Assembly: GCA_965240325.2 (NCBI GenBank)
Contig: OZ251239.1
Coordinates: 1,302,001-1,366,000, forward strand
DNA length: 64,000 nt
From: Rebecca billardiae RCC1528
Lineage: Eukaryota > Protista > Haptophyta
Direction: 5' to 3'
Part shown: positions 2,954 to 49,700 of the stretch, in pieces
How the letters are laid out: the number at the start of each line of letters is the position of its first letter
Numbering within the stretch: position 1 is the first letter of the stretch
Translations under genes and position numbers: made by a program
The notes under the pieces: generated by a model
The model's database searches: none
Told to the model about the DNA's origin: nothing
Seen by the model: only the letters and a program-made list of their open reading frames with translations

Positions 2954-4277
2954 GCGCAACGGCGGACGCGGCGGCGGCATTGGCGGCAGCCCTCTCGGCG
3001 CGGCCGCCAGCCCGCGCAGCGCAATGCCCCCGCTCGTCACACCGACCAGCCCCCTTACCCTGCCCCGACGGCTGGACCGCCGTGAGCTGCCGCCGCCGGC
3101 AGCCGGCGCCGCCGGCGCACTTGCCGCCGCGGACGCGGAGGGCGGCGCGGCGGGTGGCGGCGGCAGCGGCGGCAAGCGCGCCCGCTCGGCTCGCGGCCGC
3201 GCGCGCGCGTCAGCCGGAGCGGGGGCGGGCGTGCGCTCCGCGGGCGGGGCGAGCAGCGCGAGTGGCAGCGGCGGCGCCGCGCTTCAACTCTCATCCGCCG
3301 CCGCCGCCGCCAGCCCTCAGCGCCGCCGCCCCTCGCCTGGCGCCGCCGCCGGCGCGCAGCAGGCATTCGCGGCCGCGCGCGGCCTGCCAGAGCGGCGCGC
3401 GCCGCTGTGCGGCTCCGAGCAGCTGCTCGACTTTGACTTTGTGAACTACTCGCGGCTGGCGGAGCTGAGCCAGTGCGAGGGGCTCATCGCCAAGTGCACG
3501 TGCGCGCAGGTGTGTCGCTGGCACGCGCGCTCGCTCTCCGCTGCTGGTTGGGTGTCCGAGGCCGACCTCCACCCGGACCGCCCGGACTTTTCGACGCTGC
3601 GGCTGCGCGTGCCGGCCGGCGGCGGCGGCGGCGGCGCGCTGGACGACGGCGGCGGCTGCGCCACCACCGAGCTGGGCTTCAAGGAGAACCTCGTGCGCTT
3701 CACGCAGCTGCCCGCGCCGCCGGCCGACGGCGCGTCGCCTGAGCAAGTCCACTTTGCTCGGCGGCACGCGGCCGCGCACCGCCCCCGCCCGCACTATGCG
3801 AGTCGCGCGCCGGCCGAGGCGGCGGCGCCCGGCGGCGGCGGCGGCGCGGCCGGCGCGGGCGCGAGTAGCTGGCTGGAGCTGTGGTTCGCCAACGAGTGCC
3901 CCGAGCACTGGGGCACGCTCTCGGCGACCAAGTGGTGGAAGGGCCTCGCCATCCGCTACGAGGAGCGACCGCGGCCGCGCGGCGGCGGGCGCAGTGCCGA
4001 GCGCGGCGGCGGCGCGCGCTCGGCGCCGGCCGCGTGCTGCTACTCGTACGCCGAGCTCGAGCACGACGCACGCGGGCCGTGCCGAGTGGTCGGGCTGTGG
4101 CGGCTGCCGGTGCAGCACGTGCCGCCGGCCGACGCGCCGCTCGAGCAGCAGCCGATGCTGCACCTCTGCCTCGCCAAGGCCAAGGCGTTCGGCATCAAGC
4201 GCGTCGTCTGGCGCGTGGCCATCCCGGTCGCCGACCTGCTCGGCAAGCGCACCTACATCACGTGGGTGGTGGACTGA
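3..4277 (+). CDS. AGC-group Ser/Thr kinase, IRE/Rim15/Greatwall(MASTL)-like; 5'-truncated by the window edge
   Basis: The frame is open from position 3 to the TGA at 4275-4277. It has a CRICE...H...C zinc-finger-like motif at ~138-200, as in plant IRE and fungal Rim15. Kinase motifs present: GGFGRV, YAIK, HRDLKPEN, DFG, a long insert between DFG and GSLPYLAPE, and DWWAVG. A hydrophobic-motif-like FDFVNYSRL lies at ~3432. Confidence 0.9.
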
Positions 4278-20188: not shown

Positions 20189-20697
20189 CAGGCAATCGCG
20201 GGCAATAAGAAGTCAGAGATCTCACGGCTAGCCTCGGTTTCTTAGCCGTTCGGTAGCCCGAGCGCCTACGGAGTCTCAGTTTCTTAGCTCGGTCCGCCCG
20301 CCGCGCAGGCGCGGGGGCCGGGGCGCAGGGGGGCAGAGCCCCCCGCTGAGTCTTTAGGCCCGGCTGGCGAGGCCGACGAAAACTTTGGGCCTTTTTGGAG
20401 CAAATCTGGCATGATGTTGCATGGATCTGCGGTGCACTGGCCAGGAGTCAGTCATCAGGAGAAGTCGGGACTTGGCCTGTACTCGTAGTCGGGCCGCGCG
20501 CCGCGTCCCCGACGGGCCGACTGCGCCTCGCCCCTCGGCGGACCACTCGTCAGCCGGGATGACGTAGTCCCGGTTTCTTAGTGTGACTATGCGTATAGCG
20601 AACCAGCCAATCGCTAGCCTCAGTTTCTAGGCCAGATCCGCAGATAGCAAGCCCCAGTTTCTTAATGTGATAGCTCCTTATTGCCCGCGATTGCCTG
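20189..20697 (+). mobile_element. MITE, Tc1/mariner-pogo-like, copy 1
   Basis: 21-bp TIR CAGGCAATCGCGGGCAATAAG...CTTATTGCCCGCGATTGCCTG. Flanked by TA on the left and CA (mutated TA) on the right. Internal repeated C(A/G)GTTTCT(T)A motifs. No ORF. Confidence 0.9.
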
Positions 20698-20812
20698 CAC
20701 TTCTATCGCCTAGTCAGCCACTAGTGCACTACCGGTTGACAGTAAGTAGTAACCTTCTCCCGGGCGTTCCGGACGCCTGACTCCATTCCGACTACATGCG
20801 ACCACAGCCATA

Positions 20813-21323
20813 CAGGCAATCGCGGGCAATAAGGAGCTGTCACGTTAAGAAACTGGGGCTTGCTATCTGCGGATCTGGCCTAGAAACTGAGGCTAGCGAT
20901 TGGCTGGTTCGCTATACGCATAGTCACACTAAGAAACCGGGACTACGTCGTCCCGGCTGACGAGTGGTCCGCCGAGGGGCGAGGCCGAGGCGCAGCCGGC
21001 CAGTCGGGGACGCGGCGCGCGGCCCGACTACGAGTACAGGCCAAGTCCCGACTTCTCCTGATGACTGACTCCTGGCCAGTGCACCGCAGCATCCATGCAA
21101 CATCATGCCAGATTTGCTCCAAAAAGGCCCAAAATTTTCGTCGGCCTCGCCGGCCGGGCCTAAAGACTCAGCGGGGGGCTCTGCCCCCCTGCGCCCCCCG
21201 CGCCTGCGCGGCGGGCGGACCTAGCTAAGAAACTGAGACTCCGTAGGCGCTCGGGCTACCGAACGGCTAAGAAACCGAGGCTAGCCGTGAGATCTCTGAC
21301 TTCTTATTGCCCGCGATTGCCTG
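20813..21323 (-). mobile_element. MITE, Tc1/mariner-pogo-like, copy 2 (inverted relative to copy 1)
   Basis: Same 21-bp TIRs with TA on both sides (20811-12, 21324-25). The body is the near-identical reverse complement of 20189-20697. Confidence 0.92.
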
Positions 21324-21406
21324 TACGCAGCTCGTCGGGACTTACGTCTCCCGGTTAGCTTGTCGATTTGCAAACGCCAAGGCCTGTGACACGCAGGAAG
21401 ACTGAT

Positions 21407-23649
21407 CACGGTGAACAGAATGGCGGCCAAATGTGTACTTTAGGGTGGCCGCCGCGCGACGCGGGCCGGCGGCCTAGTAAGAACCCTGAGCCGGCGCGGA
21501 CGGGCACTGACAGGTGCGCAACCACCCAATACATGCTTCAGACACCGCTCACCAGCCCCTGTCACCTCGTCTCCTCGTCTGTTACTGCCCGCGACACGCG
21601 CGAATGTCAACTCAATCGCCGTGCGTCGCGCGACCGCGCGGCCGCGCGCGCATGCGGTGCGCAGGCGTCAGATGGCGGAGGTGGAGATGCGGTGCGACGC
21701 GCATGGACGATCTCGCGCGGACGCACCTCGCTCGCAGGCCCGCTGCCACTGGATGCGCCCGGCTGCACCGTCTTGCTGCGCGCAGTCGCAGCCGGCCGTT
21801 CTTGTCGACGGTGTTGGTGCGCTTCTTCATGATCTTGCCCACGATCACCTGCTTGGCGGCCTGCTCGACGCGGCCCGCTCGCGGCATGCTCGTGCCGCGT
21901 CTGTTCGAGCTCAGCCCGCCCGGCCGGCACGTGCGGTCGCGGAACGTGTTGCCGATGATCTTGCCGTCGTGCTCAGACGCTTGTGTGCTCGCGCGGTGCA
22001 GCGCGCCGCCGAGTCGCACGATGGCGCGAAGGGCGATGGCGACGACCACGTGCGGGTAGCACGCGACCGTGCTCGTCCACCGCTTGAGCTCGCGCGCATA
22101 CGCGCACCAGGCGTTGAGCGCAGCAAGCACCATCACCTTCACCTCCGCGGCGGTCGTCGGACGCCGCCGACGAGTTCGCGCACCGCGCGTGAGCTGCGGC
22201 TGCTGCGGTGCCTGAGCAGCGTTGGCGTAGCCCTCGCACGGCACGATGGCGTCACGCGCGTGCTGCATCCTCTGCTGGGCGTGGCCCTGGCCCTGGCGGT
22301 ACCTGGCCGCACGCGGCGCGCACTACGACCTCGTCGTGTCCACTTTGCGTCTGCCGACGGCTCGGTCCATTCACTGATCGTCAGCCCTGGCCCTGGGCTC
22401 CGCGGGGCCCGTGCAGCGCCACTGCTGTGCGACGATCGCATCGATATGACTCACAGCGACTCACGCGTGCGTGTGTCGTAGTAGTATGGCAGCGTCGTCA
22501 TGCAGGGCATCAGACGACTGATGACGAGGCCTCCTGCCCGAAGCGCACGGGCCCGCGGAGGGATGAAAGTCGAAAGACATGATTGGCTCGTCCGGACGCG
22601 CGCCGATCCGATCACGCTGCTCGTCGCGCCCAGATTCCGCGCTCTGCTCGCCATGATGACGAACGAAGCACGGACTCCTGCAGGCCGAGGTGCTCAACGG
22701 CGCACTTACTGCGTCGGCGACAGGATCCTCCATCAGCTCCCGCCCCTGTCGCAGCAGGGCACGGCTGAGGGTCACACCCGCTGATGGCCCTCCCCGCCTC
22801 GAGCTGCATCCACGAGCGCACATCAGAAAGTGCGCGCTCGCGATCGCCCACATCAGAGAGCGCATCACTCCCGACGCTCACCCCGGCGGTACGATGTAGC
22901 CCGGTGGGGCGCTGATCGCTGCCATCAGCTTCGCCGCCACGCCGCTGTCCATCCTCGGGATCTGGTGCTCTGCGAGCACTGGCCAGTGTCGAGCTGCGCT
23001 GCTCACCACGCGCCCACCTCAGATTGATCCGGCGCGCAACGAAAGAGAAGAGAGAACTGCACTGCCGAGCGAACGGCGCGGCCTCGTATCGCACCTGGTA
23101 CTACTCCGGCAGCGGACTTTCACCCGCCGCGGCCTTCGGCGCCTCCTGCTGGTGCTTCAGCTTGAGTTGCGGCAACTGCACCATATCACCTCTGCGCGAG
23201 CGCGCCGGAGAGGGTGCGCAGCAGGGGACATCGCGCGAGATTGGCCGGTCGATAGCGATCGGAACTTCAAGGGAGGATGCGCGCATGTGTCGCCCTCCCA
23301 TTCGTCCCCTTTCGCGAGACATCGACCGAAGGTTTTCGGGACGCCGCGCATCTGCGCGTGCGAGGTGGCATGACAGCCGCTCACCGCGGGCATCGTCAGC
23401 AGCTTGCTGCCACGCGCGTTGTAGCGCCGCTTCGTCTTCTCGACCGAGTTCGGGGATGCAATGGGTCGTGTCACCCGCCTCGCCGTCTTGGTCTGCTCTC
23501 TCGAGATCGAGTGTGACGTCGGTCATGGACACCTGATGGGCGGGCACTGAGGGATGGCGGCGGGCCGCCGCAATCCGCCACTGTGCCCTTCGTGGCCGCT
23601 CGAGGGGTGCTTCTAAAGTAGACATTTTGAGGTCCATCTGTTCACTGTG
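21407..23649 (-). mobile_element. Decayed RAG1/Transib-(CMC)-like DNA transposon with RSS-like 37-bp TIRs
   Basis: Left TIR CACGGTG-AACAGAATGGCG-GCCAAATGT-GTACTTTAG (21407-21443). Right TIR read on the minus strand: CACAGTG-AACAGATGGACC-TCAAAATGT-CTACTTTAG (23613-23649). Contains a minus-strand transposase remnant. Flanks share only AT, with no 5-bp TSD. Confidence 0.8.
21612..23526 (-). pseudogene. Frameshifted/internally deleted DDE transposase, RAG1/Transib/Chapaev-like
   Basis: The C-terminal segment YPHVVVAIALRAIVRLGGALHRASTQASEHDGKIIGNTFRDRT resembles the RAG1-core region [34 protein letters not shown], which carries the catalytic Glu. Upstream frames are broken by stops and frameshifts. 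A tentative GSD.../C-rich segment lies at ~22800-22875. Confidence 0.6.
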
Positions 23650-23966
23650 ATTCACCATGGCATTTTCAGAATTTGTGCACTGGCAGGCTGTCTGGCACTG
23701 CGTGAAGCATTGACGTACACCAGCGCACCGATTTGACGCCGCGCATCATCACCCAGAAGGTGACCATTCTGTCGTCTCTGAGACCCGTGGCCGCCGACAA
23801 TCCGCCCGGTCCTCAGTCATCCACGGCCAATGCGGCGGGAATGGACCTCCGTCGAAATAAGGCTGAGCTAGAATCTGTAGTCAGTCAGACTGAGACAGTG
23901 AGCTGGCTCGGCCTCGGATAGTCGGCGCCAGGAGCCCGCGGCCGAGGGGCGCGCGACTTCTATAAG

Positions 23967-25917
23967 TAGGTGGGTCCCTCCCAACTGGGGCGATATTCTG
24001 GCGCACTCAGAATGACGTCCTGGATTCTGTCTCTCACCCAGAATCGACGCTATAAATGCGTCCCATCGGGGCGGAGCAAAAGTTTCGACCTCAAAACCTA
24101 CTCCGCGTGCCGTCGCGCGGCCGAGCGCGCGCGCGCCGCGCCAGTAGTGTCACATAGAGATTTTGCGAAGCGTTACTTCATGGTTATGGTGGCTAGATGG
24201 CGACATGCGATCGGAATTACTTATTGACAACCGTTGACACCCGACCGAACCATTTTATGAAGCAAAGAGTGGGGCTCTATGCTGTGCGCTGATACCTCCA
24301 ACAAACTACAGCAAGATCGAGCATATTACCCACTTCATATATAGCCACTTACCCGTATATAGTATGAGTGTTACCCACTTTATATTGACCGTGGATGCGG
24401 TTCACTATATATTCAAATTCGTTCCGATATGTGGGTACGTTTGTTGGGTCATCGAATAGGCGCCGAGCGACGCGGACACAGGCAACCCGGGCCGCAACCG
24501 GACTGCCTGCGAGTGGCAGTGTTTGTGGCGGGCTGCGTGCCGAGGAACACAACATCGCCCGCCACCGAGCATGCCACCGTCGTCACACGGGAGCCCTCCG
24601 CCGTCGAGGCTGGACTATCAGCCAACGCCACCGCCGGAGCTTGCCGCGTTCGGCGGCTTCCGTGCTCGTACTCCGCGTGTCACCGGTCGTCGTATGCCCA
24701 CCCGCGTGAGGCCGCCACCAGTCCATGACTACCGCAGCTGCAGCCCATGCCGCCGACGATGCCTCCTACCATCTTCTCGCCAGGCAGCAATACGATAGGT
24801 TCACCGACGCTGCTGCTAGGCTGAGAGCACTCAGCCAGTTGGCCGGCGAGACGTCAGATGGTTGAGCTGCTGGCCTAGCCATCACGTTGCGGCTTCCGCT
24901 CGCTCAAGTACACCCAACGTGACGACGAGAACGTGCCGGGCAATCATCAGACATGCGTCTGAGGGGTCTACTACGCCTAGCCGTAGAGTTGCTGAGTACG
25001 AGTCTTCGCAGACCACAAGCGGAACGAGTGGGACCACCCAATGGCAGGAGCAACAGCGTGGGGTGGCACCCGCGCCTGTCAACGCGACCGCGTTCTGTCA
25101 AGAATGGACCCATATCCTGCGACCACCCTCGAGCACCGCATACTATGCCCACACTCGGCATAGGGAAGGATCGCTGAGCGCCTGCTGCCGCTGTCAAAGG
25201 CCCTGCTGATCTTCCTGGCGCTGGATCGTGCACACGGATGGCAAGTCGGCGTGCTCGCCGCACATCGCGGCGGCTTCTCAGCATCCCAAGTCCTCAGTGC
25301 ACCCATCCTAGGCCTGCTGGTCGATGATTGGTACCAACCCCCACCAAACACGCCCTCTCGGAAGTCGCCAATCGCTTACATGGCTCCCCGAGAGCCCGGG
25401 GCTGGCTGTCGTGCGTTCTCACGAGCAGCTTGCGCACAGCCCAAATGTCACCTTCACGGTGTGTAGAGCTGCTCAAGACGGCGGGGACGTCAAGAACATG
25501 CCCATGCCTGATGGTGGCCCATGCCTCCCGTCACCTGACCCGCCTGTAGCGAAAAGTGGCCCTGCTCGAAGGCACGGCTCGAACACCCGCCGATCGATTC
25601 AAGTTGTCTGTACGCGTCTAGCCGGGCGAGAGTCAAACATGCGGGCACGTGCCAGGCGGGGGATGTGTGACCACGGATCCCATCCGTGAGCACGCGCAAA
25701 GCGCTGGAGCGCGCGATAGGTGTTGGCTGTGGTCTACCCGACACACGGCGGCTCGGTCGCGCTGGAGAGGCGCTCCGACATCGTCGGGAGCGTTCAGATC
25801 GGACCTCGGCCGGCGGCCCGGCGATTTTCCCGAGCCGCGCCCCGCGCGAAAGAAATCAGGCCAGAAAACCCGGTAAATGTTTAAAAGACCGCTGGAAAAT
25901 CGCCAGGGACCCACCTA
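23967..25917. mobile_element. Non-autonomous TIR element, TAGGTGGGTCCCT termini, CTATAAG direct repeat flanks
   Basis: TAGGTGGGTCCCT (23967-79) and AGGGACCCACCTA (25905-17) are exact inverted repeats. CTATAAG occurs at 23960-66 and 25918-24. A second shared block GGCGAT(A/T)TTC is present. The interior has lower GC and no convincing ORF. Confidence 0.8.

Positions 25918-29441: not shown

Positions 29442-29482
<41 letters not shown>
29335..29482. repeat. AT-rich tract ending in (TA)n
   Basis: Almost pure A/T in a very GC-rich genome. Confidence 0.9.
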
Positions 29483-29527
29483 CGATATCATCCGGTAATA
29501 CTCGTACCCCCGTGGTTAGCCGATTCG

Positions 29528-31952
29528 CACCACGACGATTCCCGGGTGGGAGGGGCGGACATTTTGGAGAAGTTCGAATCGGCGGTTTCCGTCCCGATCT
29601 CTATTTCACAAAGCTACTCGCGGTACCGTCGGAGTAATGTAAGTACGTATTTCGCGCGGGTGCAAATCATTAGTGGCACTTGATGAAGTCGTTCCTTCAA
29701 TTCCTCGAATCACCTCCGCCCGCCCTATTCACCTACCCCTCGACCTTCGCGTTCCACAAGGAGCGTCCCGGCAAAGGGCGCCCCGGCGCGAGAGCCGCTG
29801 CCAAAGCCTCGGTAGTCGGCGGGCAGTGGGCTGGGTCTCGGCGGACGGGTGCGAGTCGAGTCAGGGCCGCGCGGGGGCCGAACGGGCGGGGGAGAGACGC
29901 GGCGTCCATGGCGTATTCGCGTGCGCGCATGGATTGCTCGAACCGCCCGAGGTAGTGTGCGCCACATGTGCGTGCAGACGGCACGACGCCGCGCGAGTCA
30001 GCCAGACTGTGAGCTCGTGGTGCTCGCGCCACACGGCGCCCGCGCTGCCCAAGCAGTGTGCGCCGGAGGAGAAGAGGAAGCTGGCGTGGGTGTCAGAATG
30101 TACGCGCGAATGCACCGAGCCCAACGCACGCATCCGCGCACGCATCCCCTTGTCTGTGACTTTGTTCACTCCGGCGGCTCAGGCCGCCGATGCGTGCCAA
30201 GTGAGGTTGCCGTCGCTGCGCCCACATCGCAAGATCGTCTTGGTCCATCGTGCTCGCGACTACCCACTGCTTGGCCCGTGATGTAGCGTAGACGACTGCT
30301 CGCCGGCTCTGGCACTCGCCGGGTCCATGCGACGGCCGGGTGCGGCGCGCCACGCGGCCGAGTGGACGGCCCGGGCAGCGGGGCCACGCCGGTGGCCCGC
30401 GCAGCGCTCGCGCACACCGCGTGCGTGCCGCAGCGCCGCGTACGGGCACCACTGCGCTCGCGGCTGGGCGCAGTGCAGCTAGCGGTCTGCCTTATTCTAG
30501 CACTCGCTACACACGGCCTGCTCCCTAGACTTGATGGCATCTGAAATGGTGCTGGAAGTCGAGCGTCCACACCGGCGTGCCGGCAGACGCTCGTTGCGGT
30601 CAGGTGTTGCGCGGGCGCAAGCCGTTGGCAGCTAGAACCCAGCTGACCTCGCGGACGCCGTGTTGCTCTCGCCAGCTGCCGAGCACGTGCCCTTGCTTGA
30701 TCGCCGTGAGAGACGCGATCGCGAAGAAGTCTCAGCCGGCGCCGCAGAGCGGCAAGCGGCACATGAGATAGGAGCTCGAGCTCGCGCAGCCAACACACTG
30801 GCGGTCCTCAGCAACGAGGCCGATGGCAGTGACGTCGAGCGCGCTGGCCTCGACCTGGATATCGGTCCGCTTGGTCGCGTCCACGGCTCGGTAGTGCGCT
30901 GCGACGCGCGTGAGCAGCCTCCCGAAGATCGCCGCGTGCTGCTGCTCGCGGATGTGGGGGACGGGTCACTGGGGTTGGACGGACCACAGGATCTTGCTGT
31001 ACCGCGCGACGAGGGTGGGCACAGCCTCCGCCGGCGGGCGGTGCAGCTTCGCGCTGTGCTAGATGGCAACGATGGCAACGTGGTGATGTACTGATTAAAC
31101 TGCGAGCGCGGCAGCCCGCAGCAACGCTTGGATTCGACGCACGCCAAGCGTGTCACGCCGATGCTGCGTGGGCGTGCCGCGCGCGGCGCGCGCTGCGCCC
31201 CCGCGCCTTGCTCGGGGCAGCGGGGCTCGCGCGCCGCGCCCGGAGTTGTATATTTATGCCTGCTGACTTGGCCTCGCCCCCGCGCGCGCCACCGCCCGCG
31301 CTGTCGCGCCGTCCGGCCCAGCACGCGCGCAGGTGATGGCGACGATCGGCCTGCCGCACAACGTCCAGTTCTACAAGTCGCAGGGCACACGGTACGATGG
31401 CTTCCGCGAGGCGTTGCTAACGGGCCGCGACGTGTTCGTGCAGTACGTGATGCCGTGGGTCAGACATCCGCAGAGCTGGGTGTCGGTCGGCTGCAGCACC
31501 GTGCGCGACGTCGAGTGTGTGTGTGCTCGGGCACATCAAGGCCTGCGGTGCGCGCGCGCTGCAGCCGTGCCACCGGCCCCGCGCGCGCCCGCCATGCGGG
31601 CGGTGTGGGCGGTGTGTGCGCCTGCCCTGCGCCGCGCCGCTCGCCCCGCCGCCTTCTCTCCAACCGCCGCCTGACGTTGAGGCAGCTCCCGCCCTGATCC
31701 TCCCCTCCCTCCCCGAGCCTCCTTCCGCCGCCCGGGCCGGGGGCCCCCGGGGCGCGGCCGATCGAGAACTGGGCAGGCAGATTGAAAGGCGGCTTGTTCA
31801 AGCCGCTGGAGTTGTATCCTACCAAAGGAGCCGCCTCTTTAACAATCGGGTTGTTTAGGGTTCAGGCTGGTGCCTTTTAAATGCGGGTACGGACAGTCGT
31901 TTGAGATTCTCACGAAAATGACCGCCGTCCCCGTGGGGGAATCGTCGTGGTG
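29528..31952. mobile_element. CAC-terminated TIR element (Transib/CMC-like), non-autonomous, carrying gene fragments
   Basis: Both ends read CACCACGACGATTCCC (16 bp identical) + 10-nt variable spacer + GGCGG(A/T)CATTTT. Flanks ATTCG (29523-27) and AGTCG (31953-57) form a 5-bp TSD with one mismatch. Confidence 0.8.
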
Positions 31953-32181
31953 AGTCGCGTCAGTCACTCACTACTCAGTAGTGAGATCGTAGATTCGTAG
32001 GCATCAGTCGCGTAGCTGTCAGTGTCAGCAGTAGGCCAGTAGCATCTACACGCGTCGTCGATTACTTGATAGATTATAATAAGATTATACCGCGCCGCCG
32101 CCAGCAGTTTCCAAGTAGCAGTCATCGATCATCGATCATCACTTCAGTAATCAGTGCGGCGGCGGGTCGGGGTTGCCACGC

Positions 32182-43700: not shown

Positions 43701-46700
43701 GGCGGCGCGGCGGCGCGCGCGCGCGTACGTGAGCGCGCGCCGCGCCTGCCGCGCGCGCGCCGCGCGCTGCAGCGTCGTCGCCGCCGCGCGCCGCCGCGCG
43801 AGCGCGGCCGCGTGCGCGGCGCGCGCCGCGTGCGCGCGCCACGCGGCCTGCACCGCGGTGGCGGCGGCGGCGCGGCGCTCGCGCTCGGCGGCGACGGCGC
43901 GGCGCGCGGCGCGGCCGCGCCAGCGGCGCGCGAGCGTCGTCGCCGCGCGGAACCGCCGCCGCGCCTCGCGCCGCGCCTCGCGCCGCGCGACCGCCGCGCG
44001 CCGCGCGGCGGCGATGGCGGTGGCGGCGCCGCGCCGGCGCGCCGCGGTCGCGTCGCGTCGCGCGCGCGCGAGCAGGCCGCGCGCGCCCGCCTGCGCGATG
44101 GTGGCGGCGGCGGCGCGGGTGCGGCCGCGGTGCGCGGAGGCGCGGCGGCCGTTGCGCGCGCGCCACGAGCGCGCGATGTGCGTCGCCGCGCGCTCGCGCG
44201 CCGCCGCCTCCGCCGCGGCCGCCTGCCGCGCCGCGCGGCCGCGCGCCGCCGACTGCGCGCGGGTCGCCGCGGCGCTCCACGCGGCGCGGCGCGCGGCGGT
44301 GGCGGCGCGCGCCTGCGGCCCGCGCGCGAGGCGCGCCTGGATGCGCGTGGCGGCGAGGCGCTCGGCGCGCGCGCGCGCGAGCGCGCGCCGCTCCCGCCGC
44401 GCCGCCGCGCCGCGCGCGCCAGCTTGCAGCGCCGTCGCAGCGTCGCGCTCATCGCGCGCGCGCGCGAGCGCGGCGCGCCGCCGCGCGGCGGCGCGGCGGC
44501 GCGCGGCGGCCTCGATGCGCGTCGCCGCGGCCGTGTCGCGCGCGAAGCGGCGGCGGCCGGCCTCGGCGTGCGCGGCGCGGCGGCGCGCGTGCGCCTGCAG
44601 CGTCGTCGCCGCGCCGAGCGCGCGCGCGCGCGCGAGCCGCGCCGCGCGCCCGCGCGCCGCCGCGGCGATGGCAGTTTGCGCGAGCCCGCGCGCGACGGCG
44701 CGGCGCGCGGCGGCGGCGAGGCGCGTGGCGGCGGCGCGGCGGCGCAGCGCGCCGAGCCGCGCGGCGCGAAGCGCGGCGCGGCCGCGCTCGTGCGCCTGGA
44801 GCAGCGTGGCCGCGGCGTGCCGCGCGCGCGCCTCCTCGGCCGCCGCCGCGCGCGCCGCGCGCCCGCGCGCCGCCGCCTGCACCGCCGTCGCCGCCGCGTC
44901 GCGCGCCGCGGCCGCGTCGGCGGCGGCGCGGCGCGCGGCCGCGCCGCGCCACGCGGCCGCGAGCGCCGTCGCCGCGCGGCGCCGACGCGCGGCGAGCTGC
45001 GCGGCGCCGCCGCCGAGCGCGGAGCGCGCGGCGGCGGAGCGCCACGCGGCGGCGAGCCGCGTCGCCGCGCGCCGCCGCAGCTCGGCGCGCGCGCGCGCCG
45101 CCGCGCGCGCCGCGCGGCCGCGCTCGGCGGCGGCGAGCGCGGTCGCCGCGCGGCGCGCGGCGGCGCGCGGGCCGCGCGCGTACGCGGCGGCCGCCGAGCG
45201 CCCGCGCCAGCGCGCGCCGAGCACGCGCGCGGCGGCGTCGCGCGCGCGCGCGTCGGCGGCGGCGGCGGCGCGCGCGGCGCGCCCGCGCTCCGCCGCCGCG
45301 ATCGCTGTCGCCGCGCCGCGCCGCGCCGCGCGCGCGCGCAGCCCGGCGACGCGCGCCGCCGCGCGCCGCCGCGCCGCCGCCTGCAGAGCGGTGGCGGCGC
45401 GCGCGCGCGCGCGCCGCGTGCGCTCGAGGCGGGCGGCGCGGCGGCGCGCGGCGGCCTGCAGCGCGATGGCGGCGGCCTCGCGGCGGCGGCGCTCGCGCTC
45501 GGCCGCGACCGCGCGCCGCGCGAGCAGCGCGCGCGCGCCCGCCTGCGCGCGCACCGCGGCGGCGGCGCGCGCGGCGGCCGCGGCGCGGGCGCGCGCGCGC
45601 GCCGCGCGGCCGCGCTCGGCGGCGGCGAGCGCGGCGGCGGCGCGGCCGCGCGCGGCGGCGGCGGCGGCGGCGTCGGCGCGCGCGGCGTGGCCGCGCCAGC
45701 GCGCGCCGAGCGCGGTCGCCGCCGCGCGCCGCGCCGCGCCCTCCGCGCGCGCCGCCGCGCGCGCCGTGCGCCCGCGCTCGGCGGCGGCGATGGCGATGGC
45801 GGCGCGCAGCGCGGCGCGGCGCGCGCGCTCGGCGCGCGCCGCGCGCCGCGCGGCCGCGCCGCGGCCGCCCGCGGCGAGCGCGGTGGCGGCGAGGGTGCGG
45901 CGGCGCGCCTCGCGCCGCGCGCGCGCGTCGGCGCGGTCGACCATGCCGCGCGCGCCCGCCGCGAGCGCCGTCGCGCCGCGCTGCCGCCGCCGCTCCTCGC
46001 GCGCCGCGCGCGCGCGCGCGCGGTCGGCCATGCCGCGCGCGCCCGCGGCGAGCGCGCTCGCCGCGCGCTGCCGCCGCCGCGCCTCGCGCCGCGCGCGCGC
46101 GTCGGCGCGGTCGACCATCCCGCGCGCGCCCGCCGCGAGCGCCGTCGCCGCGCGCCGCCGGTTGCGCTCGCGCACGAGGATCGACGCGATCACGCGGTCG
46201 GCCTTGCCGCGCGCCACCGCCTGGATGGTCGCGGCGGCGCGCTCGCGCCGCCGCGCGTCGCGCAGCGCCGCCGCGCGCGCGCGGCCCGCGTCGCCGCGCG
46301 CGCGCGCCTGCAGGCGCGTGGCCGCGGCCTCGCGGCGGCGCGCCTCGCGCAGCGCGCCGACGGCGCGGCGCGCTCGCACGCCGCGCCACGCGCTGCTCAG
46401 CCGCGTCGCCGCGTGGTACCGCCGCCAGTACGTCGCGAGTCGCTCGCGCTCGCGCGCGCGGCGCGCGCGCTCCGCGCGCGCCGCGTGCCGCCTGTAGCAC
46501 CGCTGGATGTGCACCGACGCCGCGCGCATCGCGGCCAACTGCTCGGCGGTGCGAGCTCGCTCCTCCGCGACGCGCTGACGGGCGTACGCCTCCGCCGCCG
46601 CCTTGCGCCGCAGCTTGCCCGCGCGCTTGCGCGCCGCGCGGCAGCGCGCGGCGCACTGCAGCGTCAGCGCCGCGGTGCCGCGCGCGCGCAGCCGCCGCAC

Positions 46701-49700
46701 GCGCCGCGCGGCGAGCCGGCGGCGCGCGGCGGCCTGCAGCGCGATCGCGGCGGCGCGGCGCTCGGCGCGCCGCCGCCGCTCGCGCGCCGCGCCGCGCCGC
46801 CGCGCCGCCGCCTGCAGCGCCGTCGCCGCGTCGCGCCGCGCGGCCGCGGCCGCGGCGACGCGCCGGCCAGCGCGGCCGCGCGCGCGCCGCTGGATGGCGC
46901 GCGCGGCACCGTCGCGCCGCGCGCGCTCGGCGGCGAGCGCGGCGGCGAGCGCGCGCGCGCCGTTGCCGCGCGCGAGCGCTTGGATGGCCGTGGCCGCGCG
47001 CTCGCGCCGCCGCGCCTCGCGCAGCGCCGCCGCGCGCGCGCGCTCGGCGTTGCCGCGCGCCACCGCCTGGATCGCCGCGGCGGCGCGCTCGCGCCGCCGC
47101 GCGTCGCGCGCCGCCGCCGCGCGCGCACGGCCCGCGCCGCCGCGCGCGCGCGCCTGGATGGCTGCGGCGGCGAGGTCGAGGCGGCGCGACTCGCGCGCGC
47201 GCGCCGCCGCGCGCCGCGCGGCCATGCCGCGCGCCGCCGCCTGCATCGCCGTCGCGGCCGCGCCGACGCGGCCGCGCGCCGCCGCGCCCGGCGCGGCGCG
47301 CGCCGCGCGGCCGCGCGCGACGGCCTGCACGCGCGTCGCCGCCGCGTGCCGCGCGCGCTCGAGTGCCTCCGCCTCCTCGCGCCGCCGCTGCTCCGCCTCG
47401 AGCGCCGCGCGAGCCTCGCGCTCCGCCGCCGCCTCCGCCTGCGCCGCCGCGAGCGCCGCCTCGAGCGCGGCGATGCGCTCGGCGGTGCGCGGCGTCAGGC
47501 CGCCGCCGGTGGCGCTGGGCGGCGCGGCGGGCGCGGCGGCGGCGGGCGCGGTCGAGGGCGCGCCCGCTGCGACGAGCGCCGCGCCGCCGGCTGCCACGCC
47601 TGCCACGCCGCCCGCCGCGGCGGCGGCCGCGGCGGCCGCGTCGGCGTCGGCGGCCGCGTCGGTGTCGGCGTCGGCTGCCGCGCCGCCGCCGTCCGCCTCC
47701 GCCGCGCCGGCCGTGGCCGCGGCCGCGGCCGCCGCTTGGGCGCTCGCCGCATCGGCCGAGCCGCCGTGCGTCGCATCGCCGTCGGCGGCCGAGCCCTCGG
47801 CCGCGCCCTCGCCGCCCGCCTCGGCCGCCGCCGCCGCGGCGTCGGGCGCGACGGCCGGCGCCGCGCCGCGCTCGGCGGCCGACAAAGCGTCCGCCGCGCG
47901 CTCCGCCTCCGGAGCTGGCGGCGCCGTCGCCGCGGGCGCGGCGGCGGACGCGGCGCCGGAGTCCGATGGCGCGGCCGCGGCGTCGTCTGGCGCCTCCGCG
48001 GGGCCCGCGTCGGCCGGCTCGGCGGCCGGCGCCACGCTCGCCGCGGCGGCCGCCGGCGCGGGCGCGCCGTCGGCCGCCGCCGCCGCGCCATCGCCCGCCG
48101 CGGCGTGCGCGGGCGCGGCGCCGCCCTCAGCCTCCGCGCCCGCCGCCCCGCCCTCGCCGCCGGCACCGACACCCAGCACGCTCGCCGGCGCGGCCGCGGC
48201 CTCTGGCGCCTCCTCCGACGGCAGCACCGCCGCCGCCGCCGCCGCCCCTTCCGGCACCGCCGCCGCGTCGTCGGCGTCAGCGGCGGGCGCGGCCGGCGGC
48301 GTGTCTGCCGCGGGCGCGGCCTGCGCGGCGGCCGGCGCGGCGGCCGGCGGCGCCGCGGCAGCGTCCGCGCCGGCTGGCTGCGCGCGCGCCGCGTCGGCGG
48401 CGTCGGCGGGCGCCGGCGCGGGCTCAGCCAGCGCGGGCGCGCCGCCGCGCTCGTCGTCGGCGGCGGCGGCGGGCGGCGCGGCGCGCGCGGCGGGCGCGGG
48501 CGCTGCGGCTACGGGCGCGGCGGCGGCGGGCGGCGCGGCGGCGGCGGGCGGCGCGGCCGGGCGCTCCGGCCTGCCGCGCAGCCGCCAGCGCGCGAGCGCG
48601 CCGCGCGCCGCCGCCTCGATCCGCACCGCCGCGAGCACCAACCTCGTCGCGGGCGCCGCCTGCAGGTTCGCCTCGGCGCCGCGCGCGATCTCCGCGATGA
48701 AGGAGGAGTCGGAGAGCGCGAGCGAGCGGAGCGTCGCCGCGGCGTTCTGCGCGTGCAGGAAGGAGGCCACGTTGGTGTTCTCCGCGACGGCGGGGTCGGA
48801 GAGGCAGTTCTGCAGCGTCGCGGTCGCGTACAGCCTAGTCGCCTCGTCCTCCAGCGCGAGCAGGTGCGCGCACACCTCGAAGCCGCCGCCGTCCACCACG
48901 AGCTGCGCGCCGCCGATGTCGGCCACGTTGGCGAGCACGCACGCGCACATCGCCACCGTCTCGTCGCGCTCGAGCTCGTACGTCTCGTGGATCAGCGCGA
49001 CGACGGATGGCACGAGCTCATGCCGCTCGGCGACGCTGATGGCGGACGCGTGCAGCGGCTCGGGCAGCTCCGCCACCGCCGCGGCGAGCTTGCCCACCGC
49101 CGCCTCGCGCGCCTCGATGCGCGTCGCCTTGGGGCGCATCCGGCGCGCGAGCCGGCCGAGCGCGCGCAGCGGGTCGGGCGCGCCGCCGCCGTCGGCCGAG
49201 GCGACGGAGGCGTCGGAGGCCGAGCCGTAGCCGCCGCTGCCGCCGAGCGCGTCGGCGGACGACTGCGGCGCGAGCCGGTCGGGCGAGAGCGGCGGCGAGA
49301 GGCTCGCGCCCTCGTCCGCGTCGTCGGCGTCGGCGTCGCCGCCGTCCGCGCGCGCCGCCGGCTCGGCGGGCGGCGCGGGCGCGACCGCGCGCGCGGCGGC
49401 GGCGGGCGCGGCGCCGCGCTCCGCGCCGGAGGCGGCGGCGTGCTGCTGCTGCCGCGCCGCCGCGCCGCGCGCGCGCGCCTCGCGCGTCGACTCGCGCGCG
49501 AGGTACCCGCGCGCCCACGCCTGCAGAACCACCGCGGCGCGCAGCCAGTACGCGCCCGGCGCCATCGCGTCGTTCTGCGCCGCGCCCGCCGCCATCTCCG
49601 CGACCAGCGGGATCTCCGAGCCCTCGAGCTCGGCGAGGCGCGCCTGCGCGCCCGATCGCCACACTGCGTCGGCCACGCTGGGGTCCGCGCCGACGGCCTC

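Follow-up and report, generated by a model that had tools for sequence, protein, structure and literature searches.

An internally deleted cut-and-paste transposon copy with CACRGTG ends in a haptophyte alga, probably from an undescribed family of the CMCT clade

Results

The element and its terminal repeats

We analyzed a stretch of 64,000 nucleotides, referred to here as the window, and all positions are counted from its first base. The features of the element that lies between positions 21407 and 23649 are as follows, with X1 denoting a related public sample whose contigs were compared with the window.

21405..21406, no strand: left copy of the target-site duplication (AT), read from the window sequence; the X1 empty site has a single AT
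21407..23649, minus strand: whole element, 2243 bp, delimited by its inverted ends and by an X1 contig that skips exactly the element plus one AT
21407..21443, plus strand: left terminal inverted repeat (TIR), 37 bp, consisting of the terminal block CACGGTGAACAGA, 9 variable nt and the inner block AAATGTGTACTTTAG
21612..22322, minus strand: open frame of 236 codons with the transposase remnant, supported by phmmer, tblastn and a four-sequence alignment
22323..23612, no strand: interior without recognizable coding content, negative by tblastn and Pfam and present in X1 contigs
23613..23649, minus strand: right TIR, 37 bp, reading on the minus strand CACAGTGAACAGA, 9 variable nt and AAATGTCTACTTTAG
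23650..23651, no strand: right copy of the target-site duplication (AT), read from the window sequence; the X1 empty site has a single AT

With the transposase remnant on the minus strand, position 23649 is the 5' end of the element and position 21407 its 3' end in the sense of the gene. A preliminary description of this DNA had reported ends reading CACGGTG and CACAGTG within 37-bp TIRs that diverge mainly in a spacer, and our comparison agrees with it: the two repeats are identical at 29 of 37 positions, and the mismatches comprise one in the heptamer, six at positions 14 to 22 and one at position 29. Each TIR thus has a terminal block of 13 bp that starts with CACRGTG and is separated by about 9 variable bases from an inner block of 15 bp, the left 37-mer being CACGGTGAACAGA-ATGGCGGCC-AAATGTGTACTTTAG and the right one CACAGTGAACAGA-TGGACCTCA-AAATGTCTACTTTAG. 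The pattern of the terminal repeats had no match in viral_contigs. Within the 64-kb window the inner block AAATGTNTACTTTAG was found only at the two ends of the element when up to 3 mismatches were allowed (0.05 chance matches expected).

The same description had read the ends in the manner of an RSS, whose consensus is the heptamer CACAGTG, a spacer of 12 or 23 nt and the nonamer ACAAAAACC. In this parse the left end reads, from 21407, CACGGTG + AACAGAATGGCG + GCCAAATGT + GTACTTTAG, and the reverse complement of 23613-23649 gives the right end as CACAGTG + AACAGATGGACC + TCAAAATGT + CTACTTTAG. The heptamer is matched at 7/7 positions by the right end and at 6/7 by the left end, and the element scores 5/9 for the nonamer. 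The reported values for the right end (7/7 and 5/9) are therefore arithmetically correct; the A-rich 9-mer that lies 12 nt after the heptamer is, however, not conserved in L003, the one related terminus at hand (see below). Since the conserved terminal block is 13 nt long and the variable part about 9 nt, the division into 7, 12 and 9 nt is not a natural one.

An empty site in a related sample

Contigs of X1 were placed against positions 20900 to 24200 of the window. In one of them, which reads ...GACTGAT-TCGCCATGG..., position 21397 is linked to 23695 and AT occurs only once at the joint; this contig thus represents an empty site that lacks exactly 21407-23649 plus one AT. Its junction is ...GAAGACTGAT-TCGCCATGGCATTT..., compared with ...GAAGACTGAT-element-ATTCACCATGGCATTT... 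in the window. This contig fixes the ends of the element to the base at CAC and indicates a 2-bp AT duplication, although with one empty site such a duplication is formally indistinguishable from the case in which one AT of the two belongs to the element itself. The duplication of 2 bp instead of the 5 bp of Transib, which had been pointed out previously from the flanks, is thereby confirmed. AT may be the preferred insertion target, judging from the window locus and the one readable flank of L003.

The flanks in X1 differ from those in the window by few substitutions and small indels, indicating that X1 is another strain or a close relative rather than the same assembly. Pieces of the interior of the element were also present on other X1 contigs, at roughly 88 to 98% identity, and we conclude that further copies of the element exist there. 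Among these pieces was the stretch corresponding to 22323-23612, which shows that this region, too, is part of the repeated element.

The transposase remnant

The open frame at 21612-22322 contains, on the minus strand, the peptide YPHVVVAIALRAIVRLGGALHRASTQASEHDGKIIGNTF that had been quoted earlier, and the Y-x-H...S-T-Q-A-S-E-H-x-G-K frame proposed for the interior is indeed present; its motifs are W-T, Y-P-H and S-T-Q-A-S-E-H-D-G-K. A full HMMER (phmmer) search with the 236-residue frame against 1.84 billion representative proteins returned only three matches, namely P0001 (215 aa, E = 8.9e-13), P0002 (153 aa, E = 2.9e-10) and P0003, an environmental protein of 957 aa that was matched at its C-terminal residues 829-953 (E = 4.5e-07). 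All three matches fall on the same conserved segment. Detectable homology within the frame extends over 21771-22205 on the minus strand (about 110 to 145 residues), with a tblastn core at 21813-22142, which is also the sole match of P0003 in the window. Across the four aligned sequences (window and P0001-P0003), W-T, Y-x-H, R, L and E-H-D-G are invariant. These matches support the previous assignment of the recognizable piece to the C-terminal segment of a transposase, including its presumed catalytic Glu.

Nothing similar to the first 800 residues of P0003 or to the upstream open reading frames (ORFs) of its relatives was detected within the element by tblastn. Consistently, neither the P0003 DDE core nor the ORF1 and ORF2 products of L001 and L003 matched 22323-23612 by tblastn, and this stretch had no Pfam match. 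The DDE catalytic core has thus been lost from the window copy, and this copy is not autonomous. Within the frame, the window and X1 copies differ by 16 substitutions, of which 5 are synonymous and 11 non-synonymous, and by indels; by this pattern the window copy is diverging neutrally. At E <= 10, Pfam gave no transposase family for any ORF of the element, for P0001-P0003 or for their subregions. No usable match was obtained in the ESM Atlas with the window fragment, and a tblastn search of phage records yielded nothing.

Environmental relatives and a shared inner block

P0003 is encoded on L001, a 4-kb metagenome contig, where it follows two short ORFs; neither end of the element is reached on this contig. 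L003 carries a homologue of L001 ORF1 (blastp, 2e-12) and a short acidic ORF, followed directly by the C-terminal piece, and is a second internally deleted derivative. It ends in ...CACTGTG and then AT. Read inward from this terminus, L003 has CACAGTG, 18 nt and ATGTCAACTTTG, and the window element CACRGTG, 17 nt and ATGT(G/C)TACTTTAG; the inner block of L003, GATGTCAACTTTG, thus lies at nearly the same distance from the end as its counterpart in the window. The two have ATGT..ACTTT in common, about 17 to 18 nt after the heptamer. Since this nine-base agreement at near-equal distance persists despite a protein identity between the window element and its environmental relative of only 30 to 36%, the inner block is likely to be functional, and from its sequence conservation it would most likely be a transposase-binding site. 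In L002, CACTGTG is present from the third base, and the inner block is weak. Neither a 5' terminal-repeat partner in L003 nor a 3' terminus in L002 could be detected, indicating that these contigs are incomplete or truncated.

ORF1 (L001 157-846 and L003 218-880) is conserved upstream of the transposase and encodes about 220 to 230 aa ending in F-R-V-A...W-P-x-W-G. It belongs to no Pfam family and has no counterpart in the window copy; it could be an accessory protein or an N-terminal exon of the transposase.

Of the four family members known, three (L002, L003 and the window copy with its frame at 21612-22322) are short derivatives that have lost the core and kept the C-terminal ~150 residues open. 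The retained piece could reflect a requirement in cis for the 3' subterminal DNA, and a kept regulatory fragment is conceivable as well.

Word-index protein searches with P0003 regions 330-957, 300-690 and 330-620 returned P0003 itself or nothing. A locus scan with the C-terminal alignment recovered only the known contig from metagenome_contigs and nothing from viral_contigs or genome_contigs. The family is very rare in public data, with no sequence match to any described superfamily.

Features of the full-length transposase

In P0003 we could assign, by motif context only, two candidate catalytic Asp residues, D360 (YGADAAQ), closing a hydrophobic strand, and D448 (IIGDNPF), closing a second one. 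A CxxC pair (C455-Q-A-C458) follows 7 residues after D448, and there are additional CxxC pairs; D579xxH582 precedes a Gly/Arg-rich insert. Beyond the insert, Y-P-H860 is followed 26 residues on by the candidate E886 within S-T-Q-A-L-E-H-D-G-K, giving an overall layout of D...D-CxxC...DxxH...YxH...E. The spacing of Y-x-H...S-x-x-x-x-E-x-x-x-K appears to resemble that of the RAG1 ZnH2-to-Glu segment.

The insert itself, at residues ~700-790 (L001 ~3130-3400), is an RGG-like low-complexity region between the core and the Glu helix, and it swamped our first word-index and PDB searches.

The CMCT clade (CACTA/EnSpm-Mirage-Chapaev-Transib, with RAG1 included) is characterized by a C(2)C and an H(3-4)H motif between the second Asp and the Glu, by 5'-CA..TG-3' termini and by duplications of 2 to 5 bp (PMC12730594). 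The family analyzed here shows CA..TG ends, a 2-bp duplication and the C(2)C motif, the latter being read in P0003 and deleted from the window copy. As for H(3-4)H, all four sequences share the first His (Y-x-H), and the second position is occupied by F, A or C, or by an H at +5. The second Zn-binding His had already been noted as absent from the window peptide, and it is indeed not conserved across the alignment.

A language-model comparison of P0003 residues 200-957 in the ESM Atlas gave RAG1 domains (RAG1_RNase_H, pre-RNase_H, ZnC2 and ZnH2) as the nearest named clusters, with a score of 0.94 and 181 to 187 shared features, a lead that comes without an alignment or an E-value. RAG1 families were carried by 8 of the 10 best named matches. 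By hmmscan at E <= 10, no Pfam RAG1 family was matched by P0003, its parts or the window fragment, and neither P0003 nor the window fragment matched the EnSpm-type families Transposase_21 and Transposase_24. Searches of PDB sequences at E <= 10 (phmmer and hmmsearch) yielded no RAG1 or Transib, with low-complexity Gly-rich matches and noise only. AlphaFold2 models were too poor for a fold search, both for P0003 residues 200-957 from the single sequence (pLDDT 38) and for the four-sequence C-terminal alignment (pLDDT 58, long helices only).

The preliminary description had seen no RAG2-like gene and had suggested a search for a kelch or RAG2-like partner. Consistent with that observation, we found no such ORF in the window element, and ORF1 and ORF2 of L001 and L003 were without Pfam kelch or RAG2 matches.

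Discussion

The relic is probably an internally deleted, non-autonomous cut-and-paste copy from an undescribed family of the CMCT clade that is, strictly, neither Transib nor RAG-like. We infer both the clade placement and the Asp assignments in P0003. The element inserted at an AT dinucleotide and duplicated it. The window copy, which has kept both two-part TIRs and the last 110 to 145 transposase codons and has lost the DDE core, could be moved only if a full-length family member supplied the enzyme in trans. This enzyme would be a DDE transposase and would belong, like RAG1, to the broad CMCT clade; it may recognize the inner block, cleave the DNA at the CAC ends and insert the element with a stagger of 2 bp. 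In having kept both ends and a piece of the transposase, in lacking the core and in needing mobilization in trans, the window copy resembles Ds-type internally deleted derivatives without any essential difference, and represents an ordinary fate of such elements.

Like members of the CMCT clade, the family has CA..TG ends (here CACNGTG), a duplication in the range of 2 to 5 bp and, in P0003, a CxxC pair that directly follows the presumed second Asp, as well as a segment containing His some 26 residues ahead of the presumed catalytic Glu. It differs from them in having no detectable sequence similarity to any member and no conserved second His in H(3-4)H; in P0003, moreover, a long stretch rich in Gly and Arg separates the core from the Glu helix, and the host is a GC-rich alga. 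Mirage has 2-bp duplications, and ESTA, a fungal group that is RAG1-like by HHpred, has TA duplications. With these two the family shares a dinucleotide duplication, CAC-type ends and a RAG1-like signal that is obtained only by remote-homology methods; by their descriptions, it differs from them in its hosts and in the use of AT rather than TA at the window locus and at the one readable L003 flank.

That the locus holds no mobile element at all, being a chance inverted repeat in GC-rich intergenic DNA with an unrelated deletion at the X1 joint, has a negligible probability. Long spurious ORFs and weak inverted repeats are indeed numerous in the GC-rich DNA here, but what X1 lacks is precisely the DNA bounded by the inverted ends, together with one AT, which effectively refutes such a coincidence. 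In addition, the inner block occurs in the window at the two ends and nowhere else, interior pieces recur elsewhere in X1, and the interior codes for a segment common to proteins that lie beside CACNGTG termini at two other loci. An unlikely but weightier alternative is a cut-and-paste superfamily outside the CMCT clade, in which the CAC ends and the dinucleotide duplication would have arisen by chance and the RAG1 likeness would be due to convergence or be shared by DDE enzymes with large insertions. The enzymes of hAT, MULE, P and Kolobok elements, too, have a [C/D]xxH motif and a Glu-containing helix with a basic residue after it. The lack of a sequence-level link to any CMCT family, the incomplete H(3-4)H and the poor AlphaFold2 models (pLDDT 38 and 58) likewise leave room for this explanation. 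It has to contend, however, with RAG1 families being common to 8 of the 10 best named language-model matches, and with the fact that the CAC..GTG ends, the duplication of 2 bp and the CxxC immediately behind the second Asp, taken together, make up the published CMCT signature (PMC12730594).

It is very unlikely that the element is a genuine Transib or RAG-like (RAGL) transposon, that is, a relic with symmetric 12/12 signals of the lineage from which RAG1 and the RSS originated. The exact CACAGTG at the right end, the A-rich 9-mer 12 nt inward that matches the nonamer at 5/9 positions, the spacing of Y-x-H...E...K, which may resemble that of the RAG1 ZnH2-to-Glu segment, and the RAG1 clusters neighboring P0003 would all fit such an origin. 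RAG-like transposons also exist in a microalga: the active AanRAGL of Aureococcus makes duplications of 5 bp, has 4/13 spacers and is accompanied by a RAG2-like partner (PMC9435367). This published element also means that the occurrence of such a transposon in a lineage far from animals, as had been proposed, is not new. The elements of the Transib/RAGL group (ProtoRAG and AanRAGL among the latter) share with ours the CACNGTG heptamer and ends with two conserved blocks and a spacer, and P0003 is nearest to RAG1 in its features. They differ in having 5-bp duplications, asymmetric spacers (12/23 or 4/13) and, for RAGL, a RAG2-like partner, whereas our element has a 2-bp duplication at the X1 empty site, symmetric spacers, no partner gene that could be seen, in its relatives either, and no Pfam RAG1-domain match. 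To this have to be added the lack of a PDB match to RAG1 or Transib at E <= 10, the 13-nt conserved terminal block and the nonamer that is not conserved at the L003 terminus.

Of the original proposal of a RAG1/Transib-related relic, the transposon itself, its CACNGTG ends and the RAG1/Transib/CMC-like character of its full-length relative, as judged by motif layout and language-model features, thus remain; an assignment to Transib or RAG proper does not, given the 2-bp duplication and the absence of Pfam and PDB matches. The proposal had carried the caveat that the element might belong to a distinct CMC-type branch, and with this duplication and without a sequence match to RAG1 or Transib, the caveat has become the better reading. 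A direct RAG/Transib ancestor in this alga is not supported by the locus.

A further and more tentative possibility, which we regard as rather doubtful, is that the family represents a separate, superfamily-level algal lineage beside Transib/RAG1, with two-part RSS-like ends, symmetric spacers and AT-specific insertion. If so, the layout of heptamer, spacer and second block would predate the Transib/RAG branch and extend beyond it, and the length of the stagger would have shifted between 2 and 5 bp while the fold stayed the same.

Taken alone, the locus is an ordinary dead transposon copy, and its value lies in the support that it lends to the description of a rare family. Its empty site establishes the 2-bp (AT) duplication to the base, its comparison with the environmental relative shows the two conserved blocks in the ends, and it ties the family to its only three public relatives, one of which is full length. 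It may thereby help to define a new algal branch of the RAG1-containing clade, with a bearing on the evolution of RSS-like ends and of cut geometry.

Other repeats in the window

A near-perfect inverted repeat is located at 20518-20992, 400 bp upstream of the element, with arms of 180 nt that are 97% complementary and separated by a gap of 115 nt. Further short repeats of a ...TAAGAAAC(C/T)GAG... motif continue up to position 21330. This structure looks like a foldback or MITE-like element.

A second CAC-ended element occupies 29523-31957 and adjoins a (TA)n run at 29446-29480. Its termini are different, both reading CACCACGACGATTCCC... and containing an inner ...GGCGG(A/T)CATTTT block, and tblastn revealed no protein similarity to P0003 in it. 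Finally, the G+C content at 44001-48000 reaches 0.87 to 0.91 in 2-kb bins, compared with 0.60 to 0.65 around the transposon.
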